From: Epithemia pelagica
Taxonomy: Eukaryota > Protista > Bacillariophyta
Direction of reading: 5' to 3'
Assembly (NCBI GenBank): GCA_946965045.2
Contig: OX337236.1
Span: forward strand, 2,790,001-2,854,000
Length of the DNA stretch: 64,000 nt
Shown: positions 2,831 through 35,569 of the stretch, one piece after another
Numbering within the stretch: the first letter of the stretch is position 1
How the letters are laid out: every line of letters begins with the position of its first letter
Program-made: the position numbers and the translations under genes
Notes under the pieces: generated by a model
Seen by the model: only the letters and a program-made list of their open reading frames with translations
Told to the model about the DNA's origin: nothing
Databases searched by the model: none

Positions 2831-2856
2831 GCGGTTTATTAACATGGTTATTTACG

Positions 2857-7921: not shown

Positions 7922-8352
7922 CTTGGTTTTTTGTTGCCTTGCTTTCTCTTTCCGTTGTTGCCGAGCAAACCTTTTTGTGGTCGCGCTTCTTAAACAGTCG
8001 CACTTTTGTCAGTCTCGCGAAACACACCCTAGCGAAAGTGGCATGAGAGTTAAGTTCCACCGATAGGGATGAATTCCACTACAAGAAGGGGATAAAGATA
8101 CTACCCCGCTGCTAATACATGTACGGTTGTGCATCGGGTTGTGGCAGTTGTAGCGGAACATTTTTTTGAATTGTGGGAGCAACGGACGGATGTAACTTGT
8201 AATAACGGCTCGAAGGCAATCCTGGCGAGAGCCCGCTCCTGCATCCTCACTTTTTTGTTTTCTGTTTCGCAAACAAATACCGACATAGCGAATAGCGACA
8301 TACGAGAGAAACAGCAAACAATACGAACCCAAAGAGGAGCTTCCTTGTCACA

Positions 8353-14912: not shown

Positions 14913-16429
14913 GGCGGTGGTTTGGGAAACTCTCGTTTTGTTGTTGTTGTTGTTTGTGGATAATGATAATCAATGGAACACTCGGCACGCTTTGTTTACC
15001 GAATCAAAAACAAATCAGGAACCATCCAGTGTCGTACCCTTCATTCACACGGTTGCTTGCTTGCTTGCTGGCTTTGGGAAACGAACGGAAAAAGGAACGG
15101 AACCACACTCGAGAGAGAGAAAAACACACAACCGGTGGTGGTGTGCTTTGTCCAGTGTCTTGTTTGGATGGTTGTTCCTGTTACTGGGGCCAAAGAGAAA
15201 CAACTACTCTCTCCACAGTACCAAGAAGGACAACCCGCACTCTGCTGCTTGTGGTCTTGTGTGTTTCCACTCGGAACCGTGTGCGTGGTGATTGTCACTC
15301 TCGTTCTTGGGATTCTTGTTGTTTGGATTCGTTCTCGTGAGTGGAAGCAGACTGGAGACGGAATCGCTCGAGTCCACAAGAAGAAGAAGAGGCAAACCGC
15401 ACTGTGGAAATCCTATTCCACAAGGACTGGTACTCAAAAGCAAAAGAGAGAGAGCGAGACGAGAGCGAATGGAACCAACGAAGAGAGACAACAACATAAT
15501 AACACACCCCTAAAACATCCACGAGAACCGCGCGTTGCGCCGGGTGTTGCGCGAGACGAGAAAAAGCTGTTCTGTGTTGTGGGGCGCTCTGTGTGCCTGC
15601 CGGCGCAGGTTCGGTCGCGCGTGTGCTTCGTTGGAATTCGTCTCCTTCCATTTTTCAGCGGCCACAACAATCTTTTTCTTAAAATGTTCTATATATTGAT
15701 GAGATCCATAGACGCTCGAGAGTGTACGAAAGCGTGCGCGCGGGCAAGGACTGTCTCGGAGACGGACGGGAGTGTCCCATCCGGGACACACCAGCCCCAC
15801 GCTACACAAACACAAGAAGACAAGCGACGACGACGATGGAATAGCTAGCTACTCGACATGCTATTACCTCGATAGATGTGGTATGGCGTGTCCATTGTCC
15901 ATGCTGATCACTTCCGAAGATATAAATACTCTTCCTCTTCTGGGTACGCTCCTCCAAGGCTCTTCCACAACCAGACGCTATACTCTACGCTACTCTTTTC
16001 TAGTAGTTGGATTGGCATATCATAGTTCATGAGTTGTGTATTAGTATCATTGATCTGTAGATAGATTATGGAAATGCCGATAAATATATGGTTGTTGTTT
16101 TGGTTGGTTCGTCCCCCTCCCTGATTCTTTGGTTCACACACACATACATAATGTAACATAGAAATTGGTCAATACAATGGGAATGGGGGGACGTGTTTCT
16201 TTTTTTCTTTTTCTTTTTCTTCACAGTTCGTCGTTAGTGGGACAGTGATGGACAGTACACTAGTCCATGCACATGCATGTTATTTTGGGGTAGTGTGTAG
16301 TTTCTTTTTTTTTGTTTCAATTATTTTTCTTGTGTTTCATGGTTTGGTTCCATGTTTCGAGGTGTTGTTGTTTTGTTCGTAGTAGGAAGAGTGGTCATCG
16401 TCGTCATCCTTTCTTTTGGGTGTGTGTTA

Positions 16430-19400
16430 TTAGTTGAGGGGAACGGTGGTGCAGCACGAACACTGTTGCGCGACATCGACCGTCACTTCTTGCAAGACAC
16501 CGGTATCGGCACTCTTCAAGCGACAAATTTCTTCCATTTCTTCGGGTGTGGTGGACAATTTATTGCCATGCAAACTCAATTTTTCCAATTTCGAATACCG
16601 TCCGGCATGTTCATTGGCAAAGGAACTCACGGGGAAGGGACCGGTCAAACGGTTCCGATCCAACAAGACTTCTTGGACACGGGGCGCATTCAAGTCTTGA
16701 GGAATTTGGCCGGTAAATTGATTGCCGTCCAAATGCAACCTTTTCCATTCCATATTGCCAAAGCCCGATGGGATTTTGCCACCCAAGTCATTGTTCTCCA
16801 ACATGAGGGTGTGCAAATTGGGCGATGTCATGTCCACGGTCGGGGGGATTTCTCCCGTAAAAAAGTTGTAGGCCAAATCCAAGTACTCCATATCTTCAAA
16901 TTCCCACACAAAGGGAGGGATGGGACCCTTGAACAAGTTGAAGGAGAGGGACAGAGTGTCCAACTCGGATAGTTTCGCCAAGGAACTGGGAATGGTTCCA
17001 GTAATCAAGTTGTCCGAAAAGGTGATTTCCCACAAACTCGACATCATGGAAATTTCCGGTGGCAGAGTACCTCGCATTTGTTGGCCATAGTTTCGTAAGA
17101 TCTGGTATTGTTCGTCACGGCCACACGGATCGACACCAATCATGGTGTACCAATCACATTCGTGCAAATCGGATACCCACAATTCGCCTTCGAGCCAATT
17201 GTCACCATTGAATTCACAATACATTAGGGCCATGGTAAATCGTTGTCGGATGCGGTCTACTTCAAATTCCATAATATCCTTGCCCGTACGGAGCCATTCG
17301 CGAGCCCAATTTTGACACGTTCCTGGTACATTGATCAAGGCTCGAGTTTGCGGAGGCAGTACGGGGTCGACGGCTCCCATGATGAAGCCACAGCCGGCAT
17401 CTTGAGGACAGGGCGTGGTGGGAACAACGGGCAAATTCGGTAGCACGGCAGGTCCCCCCGTCAAGGATGGAGGGGGTGCACTGGGTTGGGCGGGAGTGGA
17501 GGAACTCGCACCCAAGACGGACGCCATCATACCCAAGGCCAACACGGACCAAACAGGAACGACAGTGCCCTTGGGTTTTTCTGGCTCGTAATCCGATGCT
17601 ACACTCTCGACGTCATCGGGAGCTGCCATGGGTTTGGGTGCCTTGCCCATTTCAGTCTCATCATCGGGTGCGGTTGCCCAGGGGGCAGCTTCTTCGTCTT
17701 GTTGTGGAACCACACGCTCCATGGTGAAGGCAGGAGCTTCTTCATCGGTGGGGCGGGCATAGTCAGGGAAGTTTCCAGCGTGACCGGGTGGTGGTTCTTC
17801 GACACCTGGTTCTTGTACAGGTGGTACGTAGGGAGTGCTTCGCTCAAAGGTGGCGGCCGGACCTCCTTCGGGGCGTCCATGCATTGGGAATTGTCCTTGG
17901 TGTCCGGGAGGAGGTTCTTCGACACCTGGTTCTTGTACCGGAGGTACATTGGGATTGGTGCGATCCCACATTGCAGCAGGTCCTTCCGGTCGTTGGTGCA
18001 TGGGGAAGGCTCCTTGATGGCCGGGAGGGGGTTCCTCCACGCCTGGTTCTTGTACAGGGGGAACATTCTGGTTTCGTTCCCACGTTGCGGCCGGTCCTTC
18101 TGGACGGGTATATCCTGGGAAGCGTCCAGCTTGATCTGGTGGTGGTTCTTCGACTGGGAAATCGCGAATTCCTGGTTCTTCCATACCAGGAATCGGTCTA
18201 TTGCGATTCCAGTCCCAGCCTGGTGTTTCAGGACGAGTGTATCCTGGGAATCTTCCAGCTTGGTCTGGTGGAGGTTCTTCGACTGGGAAATCGCGAATTC
18301 CCGGTTCTTCCATACCAGGAATTGGTCGATTGCGATTCCAGTCCCAATCTGGTGTCTCTGGTCTAGCGTATCCTGGGTATCTTCCGGCTTGGTCCGGAGG
18401 TGGTTCTTCCACTGGAAGTTCTTGTACGCCTGGTACTTCGGAGGCTGGAAGGGGTCGATTGCGGTTCCAATCCCAGCCCGGTGTGCCCTCGCCTGGTGGT
18501 TGACCTGCTGATGGTGGAAGGTTGTGCAAACCTTCGGGGGAATCAAACGTGTACGCAGAGGGCTCAACCAACCCAGGGATTGGTCGGTTGCGGTTCCAAT
18601 CCCAGGCAGGATAGTCTTCAGGGTTGATGGCTTTTCCATCGGGAGTTGTGATTTCACCGTTCGGCCCAACGTCATATTCCACTGGGTACGGTCCCTGGCT
18701 GCCTGGAACTGGTCGATTGCGATTCCAGTCCCAAGAAGGATAGTCTTCAGGCTTGATGTTCGAGGAAGAAGGAGTGAGGACTTCACCATCTGGACCAATA
18801 GAATATTCAACAGGGAAGGGGCTTTGTACTTCAGGGATTGCTCTGTTTCTATTCCAATCCCATTCTGGGTAGTCTTCCTTATTTACTTGAGTTCCATCTG
18901 GTAGTTCCACTTCGCCGTTGGGACCAAGAGTATACTCGATCGGAGCAGGTCCGCGGGAGCCTGGGATCGGGCGATTGCGGTTCCAGTCCCATCCAGGGTA
19001 GTCTTCGGGTTTGATCACAGTGCCGTCAGGCATTGTTACATCGCCATTGGGAGCAGTATCATACTGAACAGGGAATGGTTTGCCAGATCCAGGCACTGGA
19101 CGATTACGGTTCCAATCCCACATGGGAGGATTCTCTGGTTCTTGCGGGGATGGAATGGAATTAGCAATATTTTCAGGAGGTGGTCCATTGTCATATTCCA
19201 CCGGAGTTGGCTTCTCAAAGCCAGGTACTGGACGATTGCGGTTCCAGTCCCAAGCAGGATAGTCTTCTGGATTAATCCTTCGCCCATCTGGTCGCTCGAT
19301 GTCACCATTTGGTCCAATTTCATACTCGACAGGGAACGGGCCCTCCGAACCAGGAACAGGACGATTGCGGTTCCAATCCCAAGATGGATAGTCCTCGGGG

Positions 19401-22400
19401 TTAATCTTGGATCCGTCTGGTCGCAAGACGTCTCCATCAGGGCCAATCGAATATTCGACAGGGAATGGACTTTCAGTTCCAGGTACAGCCCGATTGCGAT
19501 TCCAGTCCCATGAAGGATAATCCTCTGGGTTGATTTTTTCTTTAGTGTACGGTAGGAATGGCGTTCCATCAGGTGCCATTGCATATTCAACAGGTGCTGG
19601 ACCTCGTGTTCCTGGAATTGGTCGATTTCGACTCCAATCCCAGCCGGGATAGTCCTCGGGATTAATTGTCGAACCGTCGGGCCTCGTTATATCGCCATTT
19701 GGTCCAACTTCATAGTCCACTGGGAAAGGCTTTCCAGAATCTGGAAGAGGTCTATTCCGGTTCCAATCCCACATGGGAGGATTCTCTTGTTGTTCCTTGG
19801 TAGGTGGGACAGAGTTGACAAAATCATTGGAAGGAGCCATGTCATAATCATAAGGAGTTGGATTATCAAGGCCAGGTGAAGGTCGATTACGGTTCCAATC
19901 CCATCCTGGATAGTCTTCTGGGTTAATCTCACGACCGTCGGGTCGCTCAATGTCTCCATTGGGTCCAATTTCATACTCGACAGGGAAAGGGCCCTCCGAG
20001 CCTGGAACAGGACGATTGCGGTTCCAGTCCCACGAGGGATAGTCCTCGGGGTTAATCTTAGATCCATCTGGTCGTAAGACGTCTCCATCCGGTCCAATCG
20101 AATATTCGACAGGGAATGGACTTTCAGTTCCAGGCACGGCTCGATTGCGATTCCAATCCCATTCTGGGTACTCCTCTGGGTTAATCTTCTTGCCGGATGG
20201 CGTCTCGAATTGGCCATCCGGTCCCATTGTGTATTCAATAGGCGCAGGTCCGTGGGAACCTGGAATTGGTCTATTGCGACTCCAGTCCCATCCTGGATAG
20301 TCTTCGGGCTTCAAAACCTTGCCATCGGGCTGCAAAAATTCACCATTGGGTCCCATCTCATACTCAACTGGATATGGCTTGTCTGATGTAGGAATGGGAC
20401 GGTTGCGGCTCCAATCCCAGGCCGGAGGATTTTCTCGTTTCTTTTCCGGAGGAATGGAATTCACAAAGTCGCCATCTGGGCCATTCTCAAATTCCATGGG
20501 AGAAGGCTTCTCAAAGTCTGGTAATGGACGGTTGCGACTCCAATCCCATCCTGGATAGTCCTCTGGGTTAATAGTAGTGCCGTCGGGTCGAGTGATCTCA
20601 TTATTTGGACCGTTCTCATATTCGACTGGATAGGGTCCATCAGAACCTGGAACAGGACGATTGCGGTTCCAATCCCAAGATGGATAGTCCTCGGGGTTAA
20701 TCTTTGATCCATCTGGTCGCATGACTTCACCATCAGGTCCAATCGAATATTCGACAGGAAATGGACTTTCAGTTCCAGGTACGGCCCGATTGCGATTCCA
20801 GTCCCATTCGGGATAATCCTCTGGGTTAATCTTCTTGCCGGTTGGAGTCTCGAATTGGCCATCCGGTCCCATTGTGTATTCAATAGGAGCAGGTCCGTGG
20901 GAACCTGGAATTGGTCTATTGCGACTCCAGTCCCATCCTGGATAGTCTTCGGGCTTCAAAACCTTGCCATCGGGTTGCAAAAATTCACCATTGGGTCCCA
21001 TCTCATACTCAACTGGATATGGCTTGTCCGATGTAGGAATGGGGCGGTTGCGGCTCCAGTCCCAGCTCGGGGGATTTTCCCGTTTCTTTTCCGGAGGAAT
21101 GGAATTCACAAAGTCGCCATCTGGACCATTCTCAAATTCCATGGGAGAAGGCTTCTCAAAGTCTGGTAATGGACGGTTGCGACTCCAATCCCATCCTGGA
21201 TAGTCTTCTGGGTTAATAGTAGTTCCGTCAGGTCTTGTTAGCTCATCATTTGGACCGTTCTCATACTCGACTGGATAGGGTCCGTCGGAACCTGGAACAG
21301 GACGATTGCGGTTCCAATCCCACGATGGATAGTCCTCAGGATTGATCTTAGATCCATCTGGTCGCATGACTTCACCATCAGGTCCAATCGAATATTCGAC
21401 AGGAAATGGACTTTCAGTTCCAGGTACGGCCCGATTGCGATTCCAGTCCCATTCGGGATAATCCTCTGGGTTAATCTTCTTGCCGGTTGGAGTCTCGAAT
21501 TGGCCATCCGGTCCCATTGTGTATTCAATAGGAGCAGGTCCGTGGGAACCTGGAATTGGTCTATTGCGACTCCAGTCCCATCCTGGATAATCTTCGGGCT
21601 TCAAAACCTTGCCATCGGGTTGCAAGAATTCACCATTGGGTCCCATTTCGTACTCCACAGGGTACGGCTTGTCAGATGTAGGAATGGGTCGATTACGGCT
21701 CCAGTCCCAACTAGGAGGATTATCGCGCTTCTTTGGCTTTTGGGGATCTACATATTCATTTTCCGGTCCATCCAAGTACTTGAGGTTTTGTGGACTGGGC
21801 ACATTGTGTTCTGGAAGCGGACGGTTGCGACTCCAATCCCAACCAGGATAGTCTTCTGGGTTAATAGTAGTTCCGTCAGGTCTTGTTAGCTCATCATTTG
21901 GTCCGTTCTCGTATTCGACTGGATAGGGTCCATCAGAACCAGGAACCGGACGATTGCGGTTCCAATCCCACGATGGATAGTCCTCAGGATTGATCTTAGA
22001 TCCATCTGGTCGCATGACTTCACCATCAGGTCCAATCGAATATTCGACAGGAAATGGACTTTCAGTTCCAGGTACGGCCCGATTGCGATTCCAGTCCCAT
22101 TCGGGATAATCCTCTGGGTTAATCTTCTTGCCTCTTGGAGTCTCGAATTGGCCATCCGGTCCCATTGTGTATTCAATAGGAGCAGGTCCGTGGGAACCTG
22201 GAATTGGTCTATTGCGACTCCAGTCCCATCCTGGATAATCTTCGGGCTTCAACACTTTTCCGCTGGGTTGAATGAATTCTCCATTGGGACCCATTTCGTA
22301 CTCCACAGGGTACGGCTTGTCAGATGTAGGAATGGGTCGATTACGACTCCAGTCCCAACTAGGAGGATTATCGCGCTTCTTTGGTGGGATTGAGTTGACA

Positions 22401-28400: not shown

Positions 28401-31400
28401 TCACCAAGTTTAGGGTTTTGGTGTCGTGCCCAGTTCATTACAGAATCCAAGATTTCCTTTTTTGTTTCGGGTGTCATGAGAACACTAGTGGGGAACTTGT
28501 CGGCCAGCTGCCTTGCTGTGGGATCGTCCACTGTGCGAGGATCCGGACTATTGTGACGAAGCCAATTCACCGCTTCATCAAGAGCCTTTTCCTTTTCAGC
28601 AGGAGAGGGAGAAGCCTTTGACATGGTGCCACCAAGCGATGCCAATGCTTGCACAGTAGGAGTATCGAGGTTCAATACCTTGGGGTCATTGTTTCGAATC
28701 CAATTGACCACCGAATCAATGATACGCTTCTTCTCAACAGGCGGCAAGGCTCCGAGCATGGAACTTGCATCTGGGAAATGAGCCAACTGGTGGGCGGTTG
28801 GATCATCGACGGTCCTTGGGTCGGGGTCGTTCTGACGCAACCAGTCCAAGGAATCTTGTAAAACTTGTTTTCGTTTCGATGGCGGAATGGTGCTTCCAGA
28901 AACCGTTTGCCCTGCCAAGGTAGCAAGAGCCAACAACATTGGGTCATCCAAGTCCTGAAGCTTTGGTGTATTACTTCGTACCCAACTGACAGCATTTTCC
29001 ACGATGCGCTTCTTTTGCTCTGGGCTCAACAAACGTGAAAGAGCAGAATTGGGAAGTCTCGCCAGCTCTTGCAGTGTCACATCGTCGACATCATCGGGCT
29101 TCGGGTCATTTCTACGTATCCAACTAATGGCTTCCTCAGCCTTTTCATTCACTTGATTCTTGGGGATAGCTTTGTTGGGATATAAGGCCGCCAAATTCAC
29201 CAAGGCACGTTTCTTGGGCTCGTCCAAATCGCCAATAGAGAGTTCTTTCGGGTTTTTGCCACGGATCCACGACACAACGTTGTCGATGATAGCTTGTCGT
29301 TGCTCCGGACTATAGCTGGAAACAGGAATTCCTGCAATGCCCGCCAAGGCAAGCACAGTCGGGTCATCCAGCTTGCTTACATCCGGAGTATTGTGGCGCA
29401 ACCAATTAACCACTACATCTAGAACACGCTTCTTTTCCGCCAATGAGAGTTGTCCGAGGGGACAAGGAAGGTTTGCAAACTGACATAGGTTTTGCAAGTC
29501 ATCATCAGAGACATCACGAGCATTGGGGTTGTTGTTTCGCAACCACCCCAACGCAGATTCTGCCAATTGCTCCTTCTGATCACGAGGCACTCCTCCGTCT
29601 CCCAATGCTGCCGCATCCGTGATTCGTGCGAGGGCCATTGCAGTTGGGTCATCAACGTTGTTCGGATCAACGCCATGTTGACGCAACCAATCAATTGCTT
29701 CCTCCAATACTTGGCTTCGTTTATGAGGTGCAACACCAGGGACCAACTGCTGCCCAGACAAGGTAGCCAAAGCTCGAGCCGTGTCATCGGGAACGGATTC
29801 AGGCTTGGGATTGTGATTGCGGATCCAATGCAAGGCTTTCTCAACCATTCGTTTCTTCTGATCCGGGGTCAACATACCAGAAACATCCATGTGCATGAGG
29901 TTGGCTAATGCCAAAGCAGTTGGATCATCCAAGTCATTTTCATTGGGTCGGTTCGCTTCGTTCCGCAACCAACTAACGATTTTCTCCAATGCCTTTGTCT
30001 TCTTCTTCAATGGCATAGGATCGGCAAATGACAAGGCTACATGGGACATTTCTGCAAGCTTACGAAGGTCCCCGTCAGACACATCCTTAGCTTTGGGATC
30101 ATTGTGACGCAACCAGCCCATCACTTCATCTACGATGCGTTTCTTTTCTTGGACACTCAACAACTGCGGCTGTGCCGACTGGGGGAGTTTCAAAAGCGCC
30201 GAATACAGATCTGGATCGGCCAATGCCAATTCTCCATCTGGTTCATTATGACGAAGCCAGTCCAATGCATCTTCCATGGACTTGAGTTTGTCTTCCATGT
30301 CGACGTCGCCCCCAGGAATCGTTGTGCCAGTCAAATCACAGAGGGTGTATAGAGTCGGCAAATCAACATCATCGGCCGACGGCTTGTTGTGACGCAGCCA
30401 CTCAACGGCATCGCCCAACACTTGTTCCTTTTCGGCCAGTGAAAGACTGAACATTGGGACATCGGATACACCTGTCAAGTTGGTTAGCGCTAAGGCGGAA
30501 ACATCCGATAATTCACCCACATTCACATCGTTGCTGCGAATCCACGCCATGGCTTCTTCCAACAAAGTTCCCTTTTCATCAATAGACATGGACGAAACGC
30601 CTCCCTTGGGAGTCGGCAGAGGAAGTCCTGTAATGACGTGCAACGCTTCAATGGTTACCGGATCAATCAACTCAAGTTCCTCGTCAGGGTGTTGACGAAC
30701 CCATTCCAAGGTTTCCTCTAAGGCACGAGCCTTTTTCTCCTGATCGCTTGCTGCTTGCGACATAAGGGGCAGTCCAGCCAAGTTACGAAGGGCGTTCAAT
30801 GCGGTAATGTCCATATCATCCTTATTGATCGGGTCATTGTTTCGCAACCAGTTCAAAGCCTCGTCCGCGTATTCTTTGCGTTCTTTGATCGGAATGGAAA
30901 TATCTTCCACAATTTTCATTCCTGGCAAGGTTGTAAGCGCAATCAACGTAGGATCATCGATATCCATAGCATCCGGCTCGTTCTTCCTCAACCAATCCAA
31001 GGCTTCTTCCATAGCGCCAGCCTTCTTCTGTGCTTCCAAGCCTGTCGATCCTGGAACCGTGACGCCTGTCAAGTTGGCCAAGTTCACCACGGACGGATCT
31101 TCGAGGTCGGCTGCGGACAAGGCCTCATTATTGGATCGGAGCCAATCCAAGGTTTCGTCAATGGTTTTTTCCTTTTCACCGGGACGAAGCTCTCCCCGTG
31201 GCATTTCGATACCTGCCAATGTCGTAAACGCCAGCAACGTGGGGTCATCCACGTCTGCCAACGTGACGTCATTGTTGCGAATCCAATCCAAGGTTGAGCT
31301 TAGAATGTCGTTCTTCTCCTTCTCATTGAGCTGCAAGGCAGGCATATCCAATCCAGCCAAATTCATCAAGGCCGCCAAGGCAGTGGGGTCCATCTCCTCT

Positions 31401-34400
31401 GCAGCCTTGGCATCCACATTGTTGTTGCGGACCCAGCCTGCAACCTCTTCCATAAACTTTTTCTTATCCTTCTTGAGAAACTTGGGAGGAGGCATATCGA
31501 CTCCAGCCAAATTACAAAGAGCTTCTAGGGCATCTGGGTCCACATGCTCGACATCAGGGATTTCATTGTTGCGGATCCATTCCACGGCATTGGTCAGAGC
31601 CTTCTTTTTCTCCTTGCGAGGCATATTGGAAATGGGGATGGAAACACCGGCAAGATTCGCCAATCGTCCCAGTGTTCCTGGATCGGCCATCTCAATCGTG
31701 GGGTCATTGGCACGCAACCATGCGAGGGCTTCGTCCAAGGTTTCTCCCTTTTGTTTATCCGTCAAGGACAACTCTTCCACTCCAAATCCGGCCAAGTTTT
31801 GAACGGCACCCATGGTCGTGGGGTCCAACTCTTCCATGGGATCGTGAACTTGATTCTTGCGGAGCCAATCGGTCGTCATGTCAAAGTCACCAATCGTCTT
31901 GTTGATGGAGGGCATGGAAGATCCCGACACTTGCGAGGTGATGGATCCCACTCCATCTTGGGTGGGATCAGCGCTCTTGAGCCAATCCAAGGCATCTTGC
32001 ATCGATTGCGCTCGTTCTTCTTCGGGGGACAACTTTTTGGTACTACCACGGGGACCCTTGGTACGGGCCGTCTTGGCGGTACGGGCCGTGGCAAAGCTGT
32101 AGACGGAGGGATCGTCCATGGTTCCGGCCTTGGGGTTGGCACGCAACCAGGCCACGGCTTCGGCCATTTGGGGTGCTTCGCCAATGCCGGCCACGCGGTT
32201 GACACTTCCAATGGTATGGAAGGAACCAACGGAAACATCGTCGGCGACGGCCAAATCGCCCGTGTTGCTTTCGTTGCGGAGCCAATTGAGGGCGTCGGCC
32301 ATTTCCTTGGCGCGGCGTTCTTCGTCCGTCATGAATTCTGTCTTGACACTACCGCGGTCAATCGATCCGACATCGGCCATGTCATCCGATTCGTAGTTTT
32401 GGTCATTGTCCTTGCGGAGCCAGCTCATGGGGTCATCCAAATCCTTGTCCACAACAGCTTCGGGAACAATATTCAACTTGGCCGTGGCACTGCCGAGCGA
32501 CTTGAGGGATTCAATCGTGGGGGCATCGGGCCCGGCTGCGGCATCGTTTTGGCGCAACCAATTGAGGGCACTTTCCATATCCTTTTGTTGTCGCTGGGCT
32601 TGATCGCCCGTGGCGGAAAAGAATTGGACCGTCTTGACCGATTCCAGCGACTTTTTGGAATGCTGACTCAATTCATCCAGGGTAAAATCCTTGGCGGCGT
32701 CATTGCTGCGCAACCACTCGAGGGCATTTTCCATGGCATCGGCAATCTCGTAGGGCGATCGCTCACCGGCATCGGGGAACATGGACTTGATTTGAGAATG
32801 CTTGGAGACGGAACCATCATCCATACTGGGATCGTCATAATTCAAGTCATTGTTGCGAAGCCACGACAAGGCTTCCTCCATTTCCTTGGCGCGTTTTTCT
32901 TCTTCCGACAAGAATCCAGCCCCCAAGGTTTCATAAGTGCTGGGACCGGCGGGTCCCGCCAATTCACCAGCGGCGGCATCGTCCTTGCCACCGCGCAACC
33001 AATCCAAGGCATCTTCGACCATTCCACCCTGTTCTTCTTCCAAACCCGTCATGTTGGTGGGCGCATCCGGTCCGGCACGGGCCGTGTACCACTGGGTCAA
33101 TTCCTCCATGTCTTCTGCAAAGTGTGCCGGTGGTTTGGGATCGGTATTGCGCAACCATCCCAGTTCGGACGGAGCCGGTGTCGGTCGGACCTTGGTCTTG
33201 TGTTGACCGCCCGGTCCCTTTTGAGCACTCCACCATTGCGCCAATCGATGTGCCTGTTGCAACTTTTGTTCCTGTTCAATCACTTTGGGTTTCACATTTG
33301 TGCCCGATTTGCGATACCAGTTCATGTGTTTTTCCAAATCTTCAAATTCCTTCATTTTGTGCGGGACGGTCAAATCGGCAAAGTCCATCATGGGGGGACC
33401 CTTCTTGTTGCGGGCCGCTGTTTCGGGTTCTTCCAACCACTGATCAATCTGTTGCACATTGCGGGCATAGTGCATGACGGACAAGAGCGTTTCGTTTTCT
33501 TCTTCAAATTTCCAATTGGTAAAGACGGACTTGACCTTTTCAAACTGCGTCACATCTTCGGGCGGACTGTACAATTTGCTATACTTGGTACCCTTGGAGC
33601 GCCACCAACCCAAGATTTGTTGCAATTGTTCGGCCGTTTTCTTGGTTTGACTAGGTGCCATGTATTGCATCAAATCCAAGCCCAATTGTTTAATCTTTTT
33701 GAGTTTTTGCAATTCAAAGGGTTCCAACATTTTTTGCGTCGTTTGATGATTGCGTTGCCAAAAGGCAATGGCCGTGCGAATATCCTTGGCGGCCGCATCG
33801 ACTTGGGGGACCGTTTGGGGCAGTCCACCCGCACTGCCCAACCAACTCCCAAACATGTGTTGAACCTTTTGAAACATGAATTGATTGTGCTTGGGCAAAC
33901 TCATGGGATTGGCGGCGGCTTGCAGTCCCTTGTTTTTGTACCAGGCAATGACTTCTTCGACATCCTCCAAGACGAGTTCCGGTGTCAAATTGCTGGATCG
34001 CAATTGAATGAGGGCATGTTGAATCTTGATGAGGGGATCCAACTTGGTATCTTCGGGTTCTTCCAAGGCGGCCGATGGTTGATAATAGCCCGACAAGCGC
34101 AAATCTTGATGGGATTGTTTCAAAAACTTTGTCAGGGCCTTTTCCATGTCCTTGGTAATCTTGTCAGCCGCCACGACAAAGACGGTCGGATCCAACGACT
34201 TGATGGGTTGATCCTTGATTTCCCAGGCATCAAACAAGTGATTGACCTTGCGCATCTTGACCGTCTTTTCTTGCAAATCATCCAACTTGTCGGCATACTG
34301 GTGGGAATGTTTGCGCCACCATTTCAAACTCGAGGCCATTTCCTTGGCCTTTTTTTCCGCCGACAAGGTCTGCGACTTGTACCGGTTCAAGGAGGTTTGC

Positions 34401-35569
34401 ATGGCGGCGGCTCGTTTGGCATCCTTGGTACTGGTATAGTCCTTACCACCCTCCTCCATCCACCAATGCATGACCGGATCCAATCCACCCGTGGCCACAG
34501 CCGTGGTGGCCGTCCGGACCGATTGCAAATCATCGTCCAAGGCTTGGGCATTGACGGCCGTCTTGTTTTGGGACAACCAGGCCAAGGCATCCTTCATCAT
34601 GGCGGCCCGTTCTTGTGTGACACGTTGTTGTTCGCGGCTCAACACCGGAGTACTCTTGGTGCCACGACCAGCGGGGGCACGTCCCCCCATGGGGCGTCCC
34701 CCCGGCTTGCCACCCTGACCCTGAGGATGTTGATGACGCGCATGTTGTTGTTGTTCGAGATTGGCCATGATATCAAAGCCTTCAACCGTTTTGAACCGTG
34801 TCACATCGGGAATGGACACCATGGCGGACGAGTCATCATCGTCGGGCGTCATGCCATAATTGTTCGGGTTTGCACTGCCCGTACTGCCATTGCCATCGCC
34901 TTGCAACCAGGCCAAGGCGCGATCCATTTCGGCCGAATTCTGCGGCTGTCCGGCCGCGGCGGCTGCTGTTCCGGGAGGACCATTCGTTCCGGCCGTGCGA
35001 CGCGAATTGCCACTGACAGACACATGATCGGGTTTGTCCACGGTATTGGTATTCCACCACGACATGGCCTTTTCCATATCTTCGGCCATGCGTTGGGCTT
35101 GATCGGCATTTTTCGTGGCCGCCTTGACACTCTTCATATTGGCCACGGCCGTATTTTGCGTCAGGCCACTCATGACACTGCGCGTATCATCATTGGCGGC
35201 AGCGGAGCTGGATTTCCACGGCGACGTACTGCGCTTGTTTTTCTTGGCATCCCGCGACTTGTCCCGCTTACTGCGTTCCTTGTGTGGACTCGAGGAACGA
35301 CCCGATCGTTTCTTGTGCGTACTGCCCTTTTTCTTTTTCTTGGACGACTTACCATTATTGTCATCGTCGTCTTCATCGCCAAACACATCGAGAATGAATT
35401 CATTGGTATAGGCGGCAGCCCGTCCCAACATGGACGATCCCCCATCGATGGTGGGGGCATTCTTTTTGCCCTTTTTGCCCTTTTTCTTTTTGAGTTCATC
35501 ATTGGCAATCAACCCCGAGGTTTGGGCCGCTTCGGCCTCGTCTTGTCCCAATCCAAACCACGATGACAT
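16430..35569 (-). CDS. Giant 6379-aa predicted type II membrane protein: repeat-rich N-terminal rod, single TM, C-terminal LRR ectodomain
   Basis: Single uninterrupted ORF with no N-terminal signal peptide. One hydrophobic segment at about aa 6003-6021, then a cap (RIRQRFTMALMYCEFNGDNW...HECDWY) and plant-type LRRs. Confidence 0.92.
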   Translation of the reverse strand: MSSWFGLGQDEAEAAQTSGLIANDELKKKKGKKGKKNAPTIDGGSSMLGRAAAYTNEFILDVFGDEDDDDNNGKSSKKKKKGSTHKKRSGRSSSPHKERSKRDKSRDAKKNKRSTSPWKSSSAAANDDTRSVMSGLTQNTAVANMKSVKAATKNADQAQRMAEDMEKAMSWWNTNTVDKPDHVSVSGNSRRTAGTNGPPGTAAAAAGQPQNSAEMDRALAWLQGDGNGSTGSANPNNYGMTPDDDDSSAMVSIPDVTRFKTVEGFDIMANLEQQQHARHQHPQGQGGKPGGRPMGGRAPAGRGTKSTPVLSREQQRVTQERAAMMKDALAWLSQNKTAVNAQALDDDLQSVRTATTAVATGGLDPVMHWWMEEGGKDYTSTKDAKRAAAMQTSLNRYKSQTLSAEKKAKEMASSLKWWRKHSHQYADKLDDLQEKTVKMRKVNHLFDAWEIKDQPIKSLDPTVFVVAADKITKDMEKALTKFLKQSHQDLRLSGYYQPSAALEEPEDTKLDPLIKIQHALIQLRSSNLTPELVLEDVEEVIAWYKNKGLQAAANPMSLPKHNQFMFQKVQHMFGSWLGSAGGLPQTVPQVDAAAKDIRTAIAFWQRNHQTTQKMLEPFELQKLKKIKQLGLDLMQYMAPSQTKKTAEQLQQILGWWRSKGTKYSKLYSPPEDVTQFEKVKSVFTNWKFEEENETLLSVMHYARNVQQIDQWLEEPETAARNKKGPPMMDFADLTVPHKMKEFEDLEKHMNWYRKSGTNVKPKVIEQEQKLQQAHRLAQWWSAQKGPGGQHKTKVRPTPAPSELGWLRNTDPKPPAHFAEDMEELTQWYTARAGPDAPTNMTGLEEEQGGMVEDALDWLRGGKDDAAAGELAGPAGPSTYETLGAGFLSEEEKRAKEMEEALSWLRNNDLNYDDPSMDDGSVSKHSQIKSMFPDAGERSPYEIADAMENALEWLRSNDAAKDFTLDELSQHSKKSLESVKTVQFFSATGDQAQRQQKDMESALNWLRQNDAAAGPDAPTIESLKSLGSATAKLNIVPEAVVDKDLDDPMSWLRKDNDQNYESDDMADVGSIDRGSVKTEFMTDEERRAKEMADALNWLRNESNTGDLAVADDVSVGSFHTIGSVNRVAGIGEAPQMAEAVAWLRANPKAGTMDDPSVYSFATARTAKTARTKGPRGSTKKLSPEEERAQSMQDALDWLKSADPTQDGVGSITSQVSGSSMPSINKTIGDFDMTTDWLRKNQVHDPMEELDPTTMGAVQNLAGFGVEELSLTDKQKGETLDEALAWLRANDPTIEMADPGTLGRLANLAGVSIPISNMPRKEKKKALTNAVEWIRNNEIPDVEHVDPDALEALCNLAGVDMPPPKFLKKDKKKFMEEVAGWVRNNNVDAKAAEEMDPTALAALMNLAGLDMPALQLNEKEKNDILSSTLDWIRNNDVTLADVDDPTLLAFTTLAGIEMPRGELRPGEKEKTIDETLDWLRSNNEALSAADLEDPSVVNLANLTGVTVPGSTGLEAQKKAGAMEEALDWLRKNEPDAMDIDDPTLIALTTLPGMKIVEDISIPIKERKEYADEALNWLRNNDPINKDDMDITALNALRNLAGLPLMSQAASDQEKKARALEETLEWVRQHPDEELELIDPVTIEALHVITGLPLPTPKGGVSSMSIDEKGTLLEEAMAWIRSNDVNVGELSDVSALALTNLTGVSDVPMFSLSLAEKEQVLGDAVEWLRHNKPSADDVDLPTLYTLCDLTGTTIPGGDVDMEDKLKSMEDALDWLRHNEPDGELALADPDLYSALLKLPQSAQPQLLSVQEKKRIVDEVMGWLRHNDPKAKDVSDGDLRKLAEMSHVALSFADPMPLKKKTKALEKIVSWLRNEANRPNENDLDDPTALALANLMHMDVSGMLTPDQKKRMVEKALHWIRNHNPKPESVPDDTARALATLSGQQLVPGVAPHKRSQVLEEAIDWLRQHGVDPNNVDDPTAMALARITDAAALGDGGVPRDQKEQLAESALGWLRNNNPNARDVSDDDLQNLCQFANLPCPLGQLSLAEKKRVLDVVVNWLRHNTPDVSKLDDPTVLALAGIAGIPVSSYSPEQRQAIIDNVVSWIRGKNPKELSIGDLDEPKKRALVNLAALYPNKAIPKNQVNEKAEEAISWIRRNDPKPDDVDDVTLQELARLPNSALSRLLSPEQKKRIVENAVSWVRSNTPKLQDLDDPMLLALATLAGQTVSGSTIPPSKRKQVLQDSLDWLRQNDPDPRTVDDPTAHQLAHFPDASSMLGALPPVEKKRIIDSVVNWIRNNDPKVLNLDTPTVQALASLGGTMSKASPSPAEKEKALDEAVNWLRHNSPDPRTVDDPTARQLADKFPTSVLMTPETKKEILDSVMNWARHQNPKLGDLDEPLLHALATLTGTTLLPSPSKQQKKKAFRDILDWLRSRDPDPNTVDDPTAWQLSRLAPGNKMSGASLPPKEKKRIVDAVVDWVRSTNPTLKDLDDPQLYALANMAGIPLSGNASPEEKKKALEEVVGWFRSHKPDPYKIDDETLEQLASIPYEARHEPLSLDAKKKIVESVVNWVRHNDPYPEEMDDPMLYALSSLAGQSLSGPNLPPRQRKKALENAVDWLRRNHPDVTTVDEPTARELARFPTAGIVGRPLTTEEKQKIMDNAVEWVRSNDPSPDDLDEPSLHTLSKLVGHEMPVGRLSLPEKKALVDNLVDWIRKNDVKPQDLDEPTMEALSNLAGIPLSQRWNKPNSQIAEEAIKWLRNNNPDLDGVDDDVLEALANLSGIPLAPHLDPKANKNQVVADAMDWLRRNDPNLDDLDEPSAMNLSELPYTKLHRPLNPAEREELFQNAMDWLRNHDAPNVDLVSDDDVRTLAKLPGVPLPDAKIPPAQKKKALDDAISWLRLNNPTAPDVADDTIRAMANVSGIPVSAYSPHNKEATVDQAMEWLRKNDDVPLENLDEPALYELAKAAGVPFLSNKPLSRSEKQRLLEQVTNWLRSNDPNPRKVDNPTAIQLATLPNAPSLFSSPKEKQDAVDTCLDWIRRKDFKPKRVDEPSLEDLANLANIPYHPGMKPAEKKALQNDIVDWLRRNRPDAQKLDEPDILALAKLANSPVSLLIPPRAKKAVVDHAVDWVRNNYVQPEDLSEPQLHALANLAGIEPPNPSLSPAEKKKAAEEVVAWLRHNEPSPEQLDDPTLDAFSKVPNIPLEETKIPDERKKLVDQITTWLRQNQVNPDNVDEPTARALATVPQLELPKGNLPNKVKKEAVDNALDWFRNNGIPDDVDDPTLYALANVAGIPTSKGFVPPDDKEEAIDKSMSWIRHNQPKVDLDEPEVVALSSLTGIPIRSLTPPEKQKMLEDAVSWLRHNPVNERDVDEPTALALEKLTGIVIPMHSSPKKKQKAVDAAVEWLRGNEPDLSDLDEPTALCLGKLTSQPLANTVFKQKEKQIEQAVDWLRNNELQPGDVDEPELYVLTKLAGVPMPGIATRPVTKDQDTPLEWLRNKHGLPETEDPSPIETLRNLPGALQPAEKTKAVEELVDWLRNNEPSTDDMDEPTMIAFSRLANVDLPRKQIGKKEKKRVTEEAVSWLRSNEPTTDDLDEPTVMELAKLAGIPISDTMTPQDKKKVLDESVDWLRSNPPNPKDLDEPTLLALSKVSGVPFAGITPPEKKKKAMEQAMNWLRNQPLDKLEEDLGSRPSLENVPMEELPEAKQRQEDMDTVLNWLRKKGADTPKTEDGPEDVLQSIPEYPSEYMNKPSKKPEEKAPSWDWNRNRGPGDVDQPFPVDYEVLPNGEIMRPDGTKIKPEDYPGWDWIRHRPIPGSRFPVPIEYTIGPDGQLMKPDGTLINPDDYPAWDWDRNRSMPGMENPFPMEYTIAPNGDVLLPDGTKVKTEDHPGWDWARNRPVAGSQGPLPMEYTIAPNGDVVRDDGTKINPDDYPGWDWKRNRPTKGFGDPLPYDYTNGPDSEFLNSIPPKKKKKPNDTPMWDWNRNQPVPTSDKPFPVEYEMGPDGHYLQPDGTVLKPEDYPGWDWSRHRPIPGSRGPAPIEYTMGPDGEFITPSGKKINPEDFPEWDWNRNRPAPGLESPFPVEYSIGPDMELLKPDGTKINPHDYPGWDWSRNRPIPGGRGPYPVEYEVGPNGEVTRPDGTKIDTDDYPGWDWSRNRPLPGFDEPTPMEYESAPDHEELQNLPPDKQDRNIPQWDWNRNQPVTGLEKPFPVDYSIAPNGDIRRPDGTQINPEDFPGWDWNRNMPIPGSRGPAPIEYTVAPNGDVVTTSGQRIKPEDYPSWDWSRNQPVPGSESPFPVEYCIAPNGDILTPDGKKINPSDYPSWDWNRNRPAPGATGPFPVEYEVGPNGDVTRPDGRKINKPEYPGWDWSRNRPLPGYVGPSPQSVDYNNGPDNEFVNSIPPKKRDNPPSWDWSRNRPIPTSDKPYPVEYEMGPNGEFIQPSGKVLKPEDYPGWDWSRNRPIPGSHGPAPIEYTMGPDGQFETPRGKKINPEDYPEWDWNRNRAVPGTESPFPVEYSIGPDGEVMRPDGSKINPEDYPSWDWNRNRPVPGSDGPYPVEYENGPNDELTRPDGTTINPEDYPGWDWSRNRPLPEHNVPSPQNLKYLDGPENEYVDPQKPKKRDNPPSWDWSRNRPIPTSDKPYPVEYEMGPNGEFLQPDGKVLKPEDYPGWDWSRNRPIPGSHGPAPIEYTMGPDGQFETPTGKKINPEDYPEWDWNRNRAVPGTESPFPVEYSIGPDGEVMRPDGSKINPEDYPSWDWNRNRPVPGSDGPYPVEYENGPNDELTRPDGTTINPEDYPGWDWSRNRPLPDFEKPSPMEFENGPDGDFVNSIPPEKKRENPPSWDWSRNRPIPTSDKPYPVEYEMGPNGEFLQPDGKVLKPEDYPGWDWSRNRPIPGSHGPAPIEYTMGPDGQFETPTGKKINPEDYPEWDWNRNRAVPGTESPFPVEYSIGPDGEVMRPDGSKINPEDYPSWDWNRNRPVPGSDGPYPVEYENGPNNEITRPDGTTINPEDYPGWDWSRNRPLPDFEKPSPMEFENGPDGDFVNSIPPEKKRENPPAWDWSRNRPIPTSDKPYPVEYEMGPNGEFLQPDGKVLKPEDYPGWDWSRNRPIPGSHGPAPIEYTMGPDGQFETPSGKKINPEEYPEWDWNRNRAVPGTESPFPVEYSIGPDGDVLRPDGSKINPEDYPSWDWNRNRPVPGSEGPFPVEYEIGPNGDIERPDGREINPEDYPGWDWNRNRPSPGLDNPTPYDYDMAPSNDFVNSVPPTKEQQENPPMWDWNRNRPLPDSGKPFPVDYEVGPNGDITRPDGSTINPEDYPGWDWSRNRPIPGTRGPAPVEYAMAPDGTPFLPYTKEKINPEDYPSWDWNRNRAVPGTESPFPVEYSIGPDGDVLRPDGSKINPEDYPSWDWNRNRPVPGSEGPFPVEYEIGPNGDIERPDGRRINPEDYPAWDWNRNRPVPGFEKPTPVEYDNGPPPENIANSIPSPQEPENPPMWDWNRNRPVPGSGKPFPVQYDTAPNGDVTMPDGTVIKPEDYPGWDWNRNRPIPGSRGPAPIEYTLGPNGEVELPDGTQVNKEDYPEWDWNRNRAIPEVQSPFPVEYSIGPDGEVLTPSSSNIKPEDYPSWDWNRNRPVPGSQGPYPVEYDVGPNGEITTPDGKAINPEDYPAWDWNRNRPIPGLVEPSAYTFDSPEGLHNLPPSAGQPPGEGTPGWDWNRNRPLPASEVPGVQELPVEEPPPDQAGRYPGYARPETPDWDWNRNRPIPGMEEPGIRDFPVEEPPPDQAGRFPGYTRPETPGWDWNRNRPIPGMEEPGIRDFPVEEPPPDQAGRFPGYTRPEGPAATWERNQNVPPVQEPGVEEPPPGHQGAFPMHQRPEGPAAMWDRTNPNVPPVQEPGVEEPPPGHQGQFPMHGRPEGGPAATFERSTPYVPPVQEPGVEEPPPGHAGNFPDYARPTDEEAPAFTMERVVPQQDEEAAPWATAPDDETEMGKAPKPMAAPDDVESVASDYEPEKPKGTVVPVWSVLALGMMASVLGASSSTPAQPSAPPPSLTGGPAVLPNLPVVPTTPCPQDAGCGFIMGAVDPVLPPQTRALINVPGTCQNWAREWLRTGKDIMEFEVDRIRQRFTMALMYCEFNGDNWLEGELWVSDLHECDWYTMIGVDPCGRDEQYQILRNYGQQMRGTLPPEISMMSSLWEITFSDNLITGTIPSSLAKLSELDTLSLSFNLFKGPIPPFVWEFEDMEYLDLAYNFFTGEIPPTVDMTSPNLHTLMLENNDLGGKIPSGFGNMEWKRLHLDGNQFTGQIPQDLNAPRVQEVLLDRNRLTGPFPVSSFANEHAGRYSKLEKLSLHGNKLSTTPEEMEEICRLKSADTGVLQEVTVDVAQQCSCCTTVPLN
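16555..17380 (-). other. LRR ectodomain with diatom-type N-cap
   Basis: MRGTLPPEISMMSSLWEITFSDNLITGTIPSSLAKLSELDTLSLSFNLFKGPIP... fits the LxxLxLxxNxLxGxIP consensus. It is preceded by AREWL...RIRQRF.MA..Y....G.NW. Confidence 0.9.
17507..17563 (-). other. Predicted transmembrane helix VVPVWSVLALGMMASVLGA
   Basis: The only extended hydrophobic stretch seen in the 6379-aa protein. Confidence 0.65.
17775..18481 (-). repeat. Pro/Glu-rich coding repeats (three 129-bp WDW-derived units, then three VQEPGVEEPPPG units)
   Basis: RPETP.WDWNRNRPIPGMEEPGIRDFPVEEPPPDQAGR.PGY is repeated, followed by PPVQEPGVEEPPPGH x3. Confidence 0.9.
18482..24307 (-). repeat. 45 tandem 43-aa (129-bp) WDWxRxRP coding repeats in nine pentamers (about 645-bp higher-order period)
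   Basis: Consensus PxWDW(N/S)RNRPxPGxxxPxPVEYxxGPxGxxxxPDGxxINPEDY, counted from the translation. Shadow ORFs recur at 20319, 20964 and 21609 (645-bp spacing). Confidence 0.95.
24545..31766 (-). repeat. About 50 tandem, roughly 48-aa helical coding repeats (EEAVxW[LIV]RxNxPxxxDLDDPTLxALAxLAG)
   Basis: About 50 W[LIV]R motifs counted in aa 1270-3675. They are diverged at DNA level and conserved at protein level. Confidence 0.92.

Follow-up and report, generated by a model that had tools for sequence, protein, structure and literature searches.

A giant diatom gene for a predicted single-pass LRR protein with two new repeat arrays

The window analyzed here is a stretch of 64,000 nucleotides of DNA from Epithemia pelagica. 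On its minus strand, an ATG-started open reading frame (ORF) of 19,140 nt encodes a protein of 6379 amino acids (Table 1). No internal stop was found in the ORF listing or the translation, and the coding sequence stays open without any intron. As about 3 of the 64 codons are stops, a run of 6379 open codons would hardly arise by chance. An earlier note on this DNA had described a 19.1-kb stop-free ORF, in which a two-repeat rod, a transmembrane (TM) segment, a cap and leucine-rich repeats (LRRs) belong to one gene, and the translation bears this out. The neighboring genes are of the Tub-domain, sulfotransferase, Leu/Phe-tRNA-protein transferase and Kelch types, and no synteny was found between them and the neighbors of homologues. 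A 1340-aa antisense ORF was also examined and was judged to be a by-product of codon bias.

Table 1. Parts of the gene and its predicted protein (coordinates within the window).
Feature	Coordinates	Strand	Residues	Remarks
Complete CDS	16430..35569	minus		6379 codons + stop at 16430-16432
N-terminal tip M-S-S-W-x-x-x-G, acidic patch, then Lys/Arg/Ser-rich basic low-complexity stretch	35165..35569	minus	1-135	
Degenerate longer-period W-helix units (A-x-x-W-W / W-Y-K type)	33170..35164	minus	136-800	
Array 1, ~62 canonical units of ~47 aa	24410..33169	minus	801-3720	motif spacing, alignment
Array 2, 48 units of 43 aa	18080..24325	minus	3749-5830	motif spacing, alignment
Nine A-B-C-D-E pentamers (array-2 units 1-45)	18497-24325	minus		basic linker closes each
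Degenerate Pro-rich units and acidic juxtamembrane segment (A-P-W-A ... P-D-D ...)	17564..18079	minus	5831-6002	
Only predicted TM helix	17495..17563	minus	6003-6025	Kyte-Doolittle 1.93
Uncharged Ser/Thr/Pro-rich stalk	17411..17494	minus	6026-6053	read from sequence
Cys-bearing N-cap (6 Cys)	17123..17410	minus	6054-6149	
~8 plant-specific-type LRRs (N-x-L-x-G-x-I-P) and C-terminal Cys cluster (C-x20-C-S-C-C)	16433..17122	minus	6150-6379	

The MSSW start is common to three relatives (P0010, P0001 and P0368), where it is likewise followed by a basic Lys-rich or RGG stretch. Degenerate W-helix units similar to those ahead of array 1 are visible in the N-terminal region of P0001. In array 1, W-[LIV]-R motifs recur every 44-53 aa from about residue 800 to residue 3713, and 52 canonical units could be listed individually. 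The unit consists of a long helix ending in D-W-L-R-x-N, a D-D-P-T turn, a short helix (L-x-A-L-A-x-L-A-G) and a Pro-rich loop. By composition the array is net acidic, and in units 17-30 two types (A/B) alternate, with an identity of 0.40 at lag 2 versus 0.29 at lag 1. AlphaFold2 predicts helical modules for six units (pLDDT 90.5), each unit being two helices and a turn; the geometry between units is uncertain, given a pTM of 0.59. The confidence of the model dips near its residues 81-100 and 181-190, and the structural matches to it cover two-unit blocks (94-181 and 184-261). Judging from this model, array 1 probably packs as two-unit bundles into a rod, in the manner of spectrin repeats. Array-1-type repeats are also found in P0002, a 2270-aa protein without TM segment or LRR, and so are not tied to membrane tethering.

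Array 2, the second of the two large arrays claimed earlier and now confirmed, is of a different kind. It contains 48 WDWxR motifs at a spacing of 43-45 aa (residues 3757-5785), has a Pro content of 18.6% and follows the consensus P-E-D-Y-P-x-W-D-W-x-R-N-R-P ... P-V-E-Y-x-x-G-P-N-G ... D-G. The units are ordered in a five-unit super-repeat: 41 of the 45 units within pentamers find their best match at the identical pentamer position, and the DNA identity among pentamers is 62-95%. Between pentamers 5 and 6, the codon differences comprise 31 synonymous versus 3 nonsynonymous ones. In another species (contig L006), the pentamer order is still partly recognizable. For two pentamers, AlphaFold2 gave no confident fold (pLDDT 45), and the low-confidence model is not helical. 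Given the strong constraint on its sequence, array 2 more probably serves as a repeated unit for binding or structure than as a passive linker. The acidic juxtamembrane segment that follows is also kept in P0010.

In total, 279 library proteins match the protein at E<=1e-3, the majority of them on array 1. Most of the giant LRR matches proved to be unrelated proteins with multiple LRRs, often from bacteria, whose similarity is limited to the LRRs. The relatives proper share one order of parts: MSSW tip, W-helix repeats, Pro-rich W/R repeats, TM segment, cap and LRR. This order is seen in P0001 and P0153 (4754 and 4797 aa), in P0181 and P0368 (3944 and 5126 aa), in contigs L006 and L007, and in P0010, which with its 1448 aa bears out the claim that shorter relatives of the same plan exist. 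Counted beyond the relatives of 1448, 4754-4797 and 5126 aa, three further loci display it. Another giant of at least 7400 aa (L003/L004) bears array 1. The segment with the ectodomain (aa 5960-6379) is 40-83% identical among relatives, and the array region is 25% identical to that of P0001. Among the relatives, array 2 comprises anything from 1 to ~48 units, and array 1 anything from a handful of units to over 60. P0010 has no more than a dozen or so W-helix motifs (about four canonical units) and only one unit of the array-2 kind; great length is therefore not essential to the family. The named relatives are all raphid diatoms, namely Pseudo-nitzschia pungens and P. multiseries (both for array-1-type repeats) and Stauroneis constricta (for the ectodomain), and nearly all others are metagenome or metatranscriptome sequences. 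A search of the libraries and the literature found no description of the family.

Evidence for the integrity of the gene comes from two metatranscriptome studies, whose contigs match the LRR, the TM-proximal part and array 2. As these contigs are only 95-99% identical, they derive from related strains; they are also short, are silent on transcript ends and strand, and may include DNA carry-over. They are colinear with the gene across LRR, TM segment and rod (16839-18946 in X6 and 16653-18164 in X8). Tara metatranscriptome unigenes match both ends of the protein. Splicing, or a split into separate genes, would have contradicted the earlier claim, and in four runs of assembled contigs no splice joint was found over 16000-21999, the region examined. 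Over the same region, the strain variants comprise 21 synonymous versus 17 nonsynonymous changes and no coding indel. Together with the paralogous pentamers, these variants show purifying selection on the gene.

The ORF might still fuse several genes, hide introns or owe its repeat count to misassembly. Short GT-AG introns do occur in one relative (L008), at the same position in several of its repeat units, the short-read contigs break within array 2, and the comparison with them covered the lower part of the gene, up to 21999. However, an artefact is highly improbable in view of the uninterrupted codons, the colinear contigs and the examined region without joints or coding indels. In addition, the start and the end are shared with homologues, each of which is encoded by a single ORF (1448-5126 aa), and the array-2 copies differ by 5-38% in DNA and are thus no collapsed or duplicated assembly copies. 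The ORF is a real, diatom-conserved gene, and its predicted protein has a single membrane-spanning segment.

Neither repeat could be assigned to a characterized family by the profile searches or, for array 1, by the structure searches that the earlier note had called for, and its statement that they fit no named family holds for Pfam, PDB profiles and the ESM Atlas. Pfam searches with six pieces of the protein and with 16 homologues returned LRRs only, next to sub-threshold small helical domains. The latter (UBA_7, UBA_DHX29, 3HBD and KIX_2) are scattered scores without a passing stretch; with a cut-off of 27, UBA_7 reached 27.1 and 28.5 bits as a sum over a whole 1400-aa piece, and no individual stretch scored above the cut-off. 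Profile searches of the PDB with both repeat alignments yielded nothing credible (for array 1 no E under 0.08, and no LEM or SAP entry), and feature searches of the ESM Atlas gave no usable match for either repeat. The array-1 model found no match in the PDB with Foldseek (best E 0.25, TM score at most 0.2) and only unrelated families in a shape search of the Atlas (TM score at most 0.39). In a wide VIA-align search its maximum Z was 5.1, for the C-terminal domain of ebolavirus VP30, which is below the noise guide of the tool. A bacterial subtilase with tectonin-like repeats (P0132) is 23% identical to array 2 and was dismissed as compositional.

At the membrane, the layout read from the sequence agrees with the earlier description. 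A Kyte-Doolittle scan of all 6379 residues found no hydrophobic segment at the N-terminus, in agreement with the claimed lack of a signal peptide, and only one TM candidate, close to the C-terminus (residues 6003-6021 in the scan, score 1.93). The 6002 residues ahead of the TM segment amount to about 94% of the chain, and the cap and the LRRs follow it. The homologues also have one TM segment each, at the equivalent relative position. The Pfam matches to LRR_1 (1.8e-20), LRR_8 and LRR_4 are confined to the last 389 residues (5991-6379), and no kinase or other enzymatic domain was matched by Pfam across the protein. Plant-specific LRRs are 24-residue repeats of the form L-x-x-L-x-L-x-x-N-x-L-t/s-G-x-I-P, and N-x-L/F-x-G-x-I-P is readable in about six of the repeats here. 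The N-cap ends with C-D-W-x-x-x-x-G-V-D-P-C, which resembles the C-x-W-x-G-V-x-C of plant LRRNT caps.

Read from these sequence features, the topology is probably type II, with a cytoplasmic N-terminus and the C-terminus outside the cell or in a lumen. This orientation is indirectly supported by the single TM segment without any hydrophobic segment at the N-terminus, the Lys on its N-side, the lack of charged residues on its C-side, the concentration of Cys behind it and the Ser/Thr/Pro stalk. N-glycosylation sequons do not discriminate between the orientations, as they are sparse in the rod (0.25 per 100 aa) and absent from the ectodomain. In the opposite orientation, the repeat region of ~6000 aa would be an extracellular giant adhesin fiber and the LRR would be cytoplasmic. 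Giant, repetitive and intronless genes for adhesive proteins are indeed known in raphid diatoms, such as the 28,951-bp gene of the extracellular CaTrailin4 (bioRxiv 10.1101/2023.03.06.531300). Array 2 is also Pro-rich, as are many wall and matrix proteins. This orientation is nevertheless extremely unlikely, as the chain lacks an N-terminal signal for export, Lys flank the TM segment on the N-side, and the LRR type and Cys caps belong to extracellular domains. The Cys distribution also speaks against it, with 10 of the 17 Cys in the last 326 residues versus 7 in the preceding ~6000. Furthermore, we know of no precedent for the export of 6000 residues that precede the sole TM segment.

The protein with the inferred type II topology resembles the diatom kinase-less LRR receptor-like proteins. 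As described, MRP2 of Pseudo-nitzschia multistriata and the MRM2 family of pennate diatoms are diatom-specific and possess one TM segment and an extracellular LRR of the N-x-L-t/s-G-x-I-P type, with no kinase or known signaling domain. One TM segment and an LRR are found here as well; however, the intracellular part of those proteins is ~50 aa long, compared to a non-LRR side of 6002 aa, largely made of two new repeats, here. The plant LRR-RLPs also share the LRR consensus, a Cys-pair cap with a C-x-W-x-G-V-x-C-like motif, one TM segment and the lack of a kinase, and plant LRR-RLK/RLP sequences are distant matches to the ectodomain (25-39% identity). In contrast to the present protein, where the LRR stands behind the TM segment and neither an N-terminal hydrophobic segment nor a kinase is found, the plant proteins are of type I, with a signal peptide, an N-terminal LRR and a cytoplasmic C-terminus, which is a short tail in the RLPs and bears a kinase in the RLKs.

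The same topology would also suit a tether of an internal membrane. The TM segment would then lie in the ER, the nuclear envelope, the silica deposition vesicle or another vesicle, with a lumenal LRR and a rod that positions the organelle. The plan recalls that of nesprin (KASH) and giantin-type proteins, where a giant rod, in nesprins a long cytoplasmic one of helical repeats, precedes one TM segment near the C-terminus. In addition, the basic Lys/Ser or RGG stretch at the N-terminus could bind an acidic polymer, and single array-1 units superpose on LEM/SAP-type helix-loop-helix domains, as found in nuclear-envelope proteins, with Z of 3.1-4.1 and rmsd of 1.8-3.1 A over 42-52 residues. The superposed segment comprises a short helix, an 11-residue loop and a long helix. 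The matches include the LEM domains 7ndy_G (Z 4.1, rmsd 1.8 A, 42/42 residues), 2odc and 1h9f, and the SAP-like domains 2do5 and 9i5y. This resemblance in the model is a weak lead, as such Z values lie within the noise range for helical models, far under the level that the tool regards as meaningful. No Pfam match to LEM, SAP or HeH profiles was found in the protein or its homologues, and array 1 is acidic and thus ill-suited to DNA binding. The nesprin comparison also fails in detail: spectrin repeats, a calponin-homology domain and a KASH peptide are all absent here (no Spectrin or KASH match in Pfam, and no sequence or fold match), and a 354-aa LRR domain extends beyond the TM segment. A Cys-capped plant-specific LRR behind a Ser/Thr/Pro stalk is moreover a usual feature of proteins at the cell surface, and the known examples from diatoms are interpreted as receptors there (PMC6261938; bioRxiv 10.1101/2024.04.15.589526). 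An internal tether is therefore fairly unlikely.

The reading that is marginally favored overall is that of an intronless gene from a diatom family of single-pass proteins, receptor-like or adhesive, that have an LRR but no kinase and are probably of type II, with a rod for tethering or docking inside the membrane. The candidate roles named in the earlier note were a membrane-cytoskeleton tether, for gliding, adhesion or valve morphogenesis, and a multivalent signaling platform. The conserved business end would be the small Cys-capped, plant-specific-type LRR ectodomain, and the short N-terminal peptide with its basic stretch would be the second conserved end. The spacer between them would vary in length and consist of two new repeats: a folded helical rod in array 1 and membrane-adjacent, Pro/Trp/Arg-rich five-unit super-repeats in array 2. 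Outside, the LRR may bind matrix, adhesive, wall or a partner cell. The most likely job of the rod would be to link this target with a partner in the cortex or cytoskeleton, at a distance of hundreds of nanometers; alternatively, it may display many identical docking sites beneath the membrane.

If docking were the sole function, the ~110 repeat units would serve as a multivalent signaling or assembly platform for cytoplasmic partners under an LRR receptor, and not as a mechanical link. Each unit carries near-invariant motifs (W-[LIV]-R and D-D-P-T in array 1, W-D-W-x-R-x-R-P and P-E-D-Y-P in array 2), the purifying selection on array 2 is strong, and the known diatom LRR receptor-like proteins, being kinase-less, would need partners. 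However, the repeat number varies widely beneath near-identical ectodomains, which fits a tunable length better than a fixed stoichiometry. Array 1 is predicted to be folded and not a string of linear motifs, and neither a partner nor a known class of peptide motif came to light. A platform of this kind is thus considered unlikely.

Returning to the favored tether, array 2 invites an analogy with modular filament-binding proteins. Nebulin is built of 35-aa modules in sevens, the trypanosome MARP proteins contain 38-aa microtubule-binding repeats, and the PEVK region of titin acts as a spring. Array 2 would be comparable in its dozens of constrained modules, its five-unit super-repeat and its Pro-richness, although there is no sequence similarity and the low-confidence model of array 2 is non-helical. 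By this analogy, the super-repeat could be a nebulin-like ruler aligned with a cortical filament of periodic structure, for example cortical microtubules or the actin bundles associated with the raphe, and the family could be the transmembrane connector of the diatom adhesion-motility complex. Such a specific role is very unlikely. In apicomplexans, TRAP-type adhesins and the giant connector GAC divide this job between them; if the ruler reading were true, adhesin and connector would be united in one diatom chain.

In raphid diatoms, the components of the adhesion-motility complex other than actin and myosin have been described as unknown (bioRxiv 10.1101/2023.03.06.531300). Among the receptor candidates for partner recognition and adhesion are the diatom LRR receptor-like proteins, which have no known route for signal or force into the cell. 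The two repeat families can now be defined for tests of folding, expression and binding to actin, microtubules or other partners, and the variation in repeat number under a near-constant ectodomain provides a natural experiment on the importance of length. The family thereby offers a concrete, conserved molecule in which a predicted outside binding domain is joined to a very long structure inside.

The earlier note described a giant ORF coding for a rod of two repeat arrays, followed by a TM and a cap/LRR module. Its coordinates and description proved right, with the gene lying on the minus strand, and the translation contains no internal stops. The protein consists of 11.7% Pro, 3.1% Trp and abundant Asp and Glu, with only 0.3% Cys; 10 of the 17 Cys are located within the last 326 residues. 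A Kyte-Doolittle scan of the protein revealed a single hydrophobic segment (score 1.93) and no signal-peptide-like stretch at the N-terminus. Matches to Pfam are confined to the final 389 aa (LRR_1, 1.8e-20; LRR_8; LRR_4), and the six-Cys cap closes with a plant-LRRNT-like C-D-W...G-V-D-P-C.

Features of the giant gene and protein, neighboring ORFs and related loci
Feature	Position	Strand
Giant ORF, 6379 codons, ATG start	16430..35569	minus
N-terminal peptide M-S-S-W-x-x-x-G, then acidic patch, then Lys/Arg/Ser-rich stretch	aa 1-135	
Degenerate, longer-period copies of the Trp-containing helix motif	aa ~136-800	
Array 1, ~62 units, 44-53-aa spacing	aa ~800-3720	
Array 2, 48 units of 43 aa	aa 3749-5830	
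C-terminal of array 2: few degenerate Pro-rich units, then acidic juxtamembrane piece		
TM (single hydrophobic segment)	aa 6003-6021	
C-terminal of TM: uncharged Ser/Thr/Pro stalk, six-Cys cap, ~8 plant-specific-type LRRs, Cys cluster		
Antisense ORF, 1340 aa	31544-35566	plus
1434-aa protein with C-terminal Tub domain	10608-14912	minus
ORF with copia-type reverse transcriptase	4535-6115	plus
Short introns in a relative's gene	L008:7140-7209, 8249-8322, 8846-8925, 11774-11840	
Frame change inside a repeat unit	L003/L004:10797-10873	
P0002, array-1-type protein	L009:10001-16813	

Four lines of evidence say that the giant ORF is one real gene. Homologues share the plan of the protein, each as a single ORF, and this comparative evidence also backs the structural reading of the earlier note. 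The large relatives P0001/P0153 (4754/4797 aa) and P0368 (5126 aa) start with M-S-W-W-T-L-G and carry 59-75 W-helix motifs. Their Pro-rich W/R array is short, their single TM lies ~375 residues before the C-terminus, and their cap and LRRs are ~40% identical to those of the giant protein. In the smaller P0010 (1448 aa, starting with M-S-S-W), W-helix motifs number about a dozen and a single unit resembles array 2; it shares the juxtamembrane motif, has a TM, and its ectodomain segment is 59% identical to that of the giant protein. On the related contigs L006 and L007, array 1, array 2 and the TM with LRRs follow each other on one strand, with ectodomain identities of 75% and 62%, respectively. 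L007 is interrupted solely by one 100-N scaffold gap; L006 is interrupted by two 100-N gaps and by a frame change near 8200, where the sequence is gap-free. On L003/L004 a 1598-aa gene adjoins a 5802-5922-aa gene, and the stop between the related protein P0005 and the next 5800-5900-aa gene is a frame change across which the array-1 repeat runs on. Since the repeat carries on after switching frame, both gene calls probably belong to a single gene of at least 7400 aa, and the frame change would probably be an intron or a sequencing error within it.

The variation and the contigs agree with a single gene. Variation is of the coding-sequence type: among the strain differences listed for 16000-21999, 21 of 38 are synonymous and no indels occur inside the coding sequence. 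The arrays are not assembly duplicates, since the array-2 pentamers differ from one another by 5-38% in DNA and the array-1 units are only ~53% identical. When contigs of four runs were aligned, no joints were found across 16000-21999 (6 kb covered). In two metatranscriptome studies, the LRR, the TM-proximal part and array 2 are matched by pieces at 95-99% identity, and longer contigs from two runs of unrecorded type are colinear over LRR, TM and rod (16839-18946 and 16653-18164). The gene would give a single ~19-kb transcript. In addition, Tara metatranscriptome unigenes match both the ectodomain and array 1.

Several details of the locus and its relatives were observed besides. The gene of a relative on L008 contains short GT-AG introns of ~70 nt at an identical place in several repeat units, where they split the Leu codon just before D-W-M-R-N-N; evidently, to judge by this placement, they were copied along with the repeat unit. 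The giant gene has no interruptions of this type. A 1340-aa antisense ORF is codon-aligned over codons 3-1342, and it is open because sense codons 3-1347 lack TTA, CTA and TCA (67 in the remainder of the gene). Its translation is junk-like and it is absent at the homologous locus L001; it was rejected as a gene and read as a by-product of codon bias. Codon usage changes from part to part: for codons 1-1342, the rest of array 1, array 2 and the ectodomain, the fraction of four-fold codons ending in A is 0.12, 0.25, 0.38 and 0.14, and GC3 is 0.62, 0.50, 0.42 and 0.58. The Tub-domain gene (1.9e-38) lies directly downstream, and the ORF with the reverse transcriptase (RVT_2) farther downstream.

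The consensus unit of array 1 is a long helix with D-W-L-R-x-N at its end, followed by a D-D-P-T turn, the short helix L-x-A-L-A-x-L-A-G and then a loop rich in Pro. In units 17-30 two subtypes alternate (identity 0.40 at lag 2 vs 0.29 at lag 1). No stretch of the array passed in Pfam, where only summed sub-threshold scores to small helical domains (e.g. UBA_7) were obtained. With aa 3150-4349 as query, an exhaustive phmmer search returned 279 proteins (E<=1e-3), of which almost all match the array-1 half. These are mostly short metagenome or metatranscriptome fragments; the named organisms are Pseudo-nitzschia pungens and P. multiseries. The ectodomain has a match in a transcript of Stauroneis constricta. 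Since P0002 (2270 aa) is built from array-1-type units without TM or LRR, the repeat is a module in its own right and P0002 a second architecture using it. P0002 has an SPKK-like Lys-rich N-terminus and is flanked by unrelated genes, with a kinase and EF-hand gene pair downstream.

AlphaFold2 was run on six array-1 units with an alignment of 34 paralogous and homologous segments in register (mean pLDDT 90.5, pTM 0.59). Each unit is predicted to form two helices, of 17 and 10 residues, with a three-residue helical turn between them, and then a loop of 11 residues. The model loses confidence around residues 81-100 and 181-190, and the segments covered by structural matches are 94-181 and 184-261; from these dips and boundaries, one A/B pair (~94 aa) would represent one compact helical module. 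This fits the A/B alternation in sequence and the ~95-aa period in P0001. No convincing match was found among solved and predicted structures. LEM / SAP-type helix-loop-helix domains were the best-covering small matches, but their Z of 3-4 is noise for helical models by the tool's guidance.

The array-2 consensus is W-D-W-x-R-N-R-P ... P-V-E-Y-x-x-G-P-N-G ... D-G ... P-E-D-Y-P. Units 1-45 are grouped into nine A-B-C-D-E pentamers with a basic linker at the end of each. The best match lies at the same pentamer position for 41 of the 45 units, and identity is 0.68 within vs 0.51 between positions. Pentamers 5 and 6, at 95% DNA identity, also show variation of the coding-sequence type, with 31 synonymous and 3 nonsynonymous codon differences. 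Array 2 matched nothing in Pfam, and AlphaFold2 gave no confident fold (pLDDT 45), the low-confidence model showing short beta bridges only. Copy number ranges from ~1 (P0010) over a handful (P0001, L007) and a dozen or more (the relative P0181) to at least 40 (L006, with the A-E order discernible at both ends) and the 48 of the window gene. The metagenomic 467-aa protein P0371 / P0139 (JGI) has hydrophobic segments at its N-terminus, followed by three units of array-1 type, two WDW/WSW units resembling array 2 and the conserved juxtamembrane motif, with no LRR; it may represent a relative in miniature or rearranged form. Neither array matched in PDB profile searches or gave a usable match in Atlas feature searches, and both appear to fall outside any repeat family described in the libraries or literature searched.

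We infer that the N-terminus of the giant protein lies inside and the C-terminus outside. A signal peptide is absent and the sole TM follows 6002 residues; Lys flanks it on the N side, with zero charge on the C side. The Ser/Thr/Pro stalk and Cys-capped plant-specific LRRs after the TM resemble extracellular LRR domains, and the long N-terminal part is nearly Cys-free. With lower confidence, the TM could reside in an internal membrane rather than the plasma membrane.

By its ectodomain, the protein belongs with the diatom LRR receptor-like proteins of plant-specific type that lack a kinase (e.g. MRP2 and MRM2), which are proposed to be receptors for pheromones or to mediate adhesion (PMC6261938; bioRxiv 10.1101/2024.04.15.589526). 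The intracellular part of these is short as described, whereas the non-LRR side of the giant protein spans ~6000 aa. Plant LRR-RLPs have the LRR type in common, but their layout is opposite. The resemblance to nesprins, giantin-type tethers, nebulin, trypanosome microtubule-associated repetitive proteins and the titin PEVK region is one of functional analogy alone. CaTrailin4 (28,951 bp) is a raphid-diatom precedent for a giant intronless repetitive gene, and components of the adhesion-motility complex beyond actin and myosin are still described as unknown (bioRxiv 10.1101/2023.03.06.531300). As judged from sequence, the LRR receptor-like kind is known, and the two repeat families, found in no library or literature searched, are what appears new.

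Conservation is highest at the two ends, in the ectodomain and in the N-terminal peptide together with the basic stretch behind it. The spacer between them evolves freely in length with constrained unit sequences, and this pattern fits a tether or scaffold. The repeats could also, with lower confidence, be docking sites rather than a mechanical element. As a tether or scaffold, the LRR would bind something outside, and array 2, next to the membrane, would extend with the helical rod into the cortex. The distal tip or the repeated units would then engage a cytoplasmic partner, perhaps a cytoskeletal filament.
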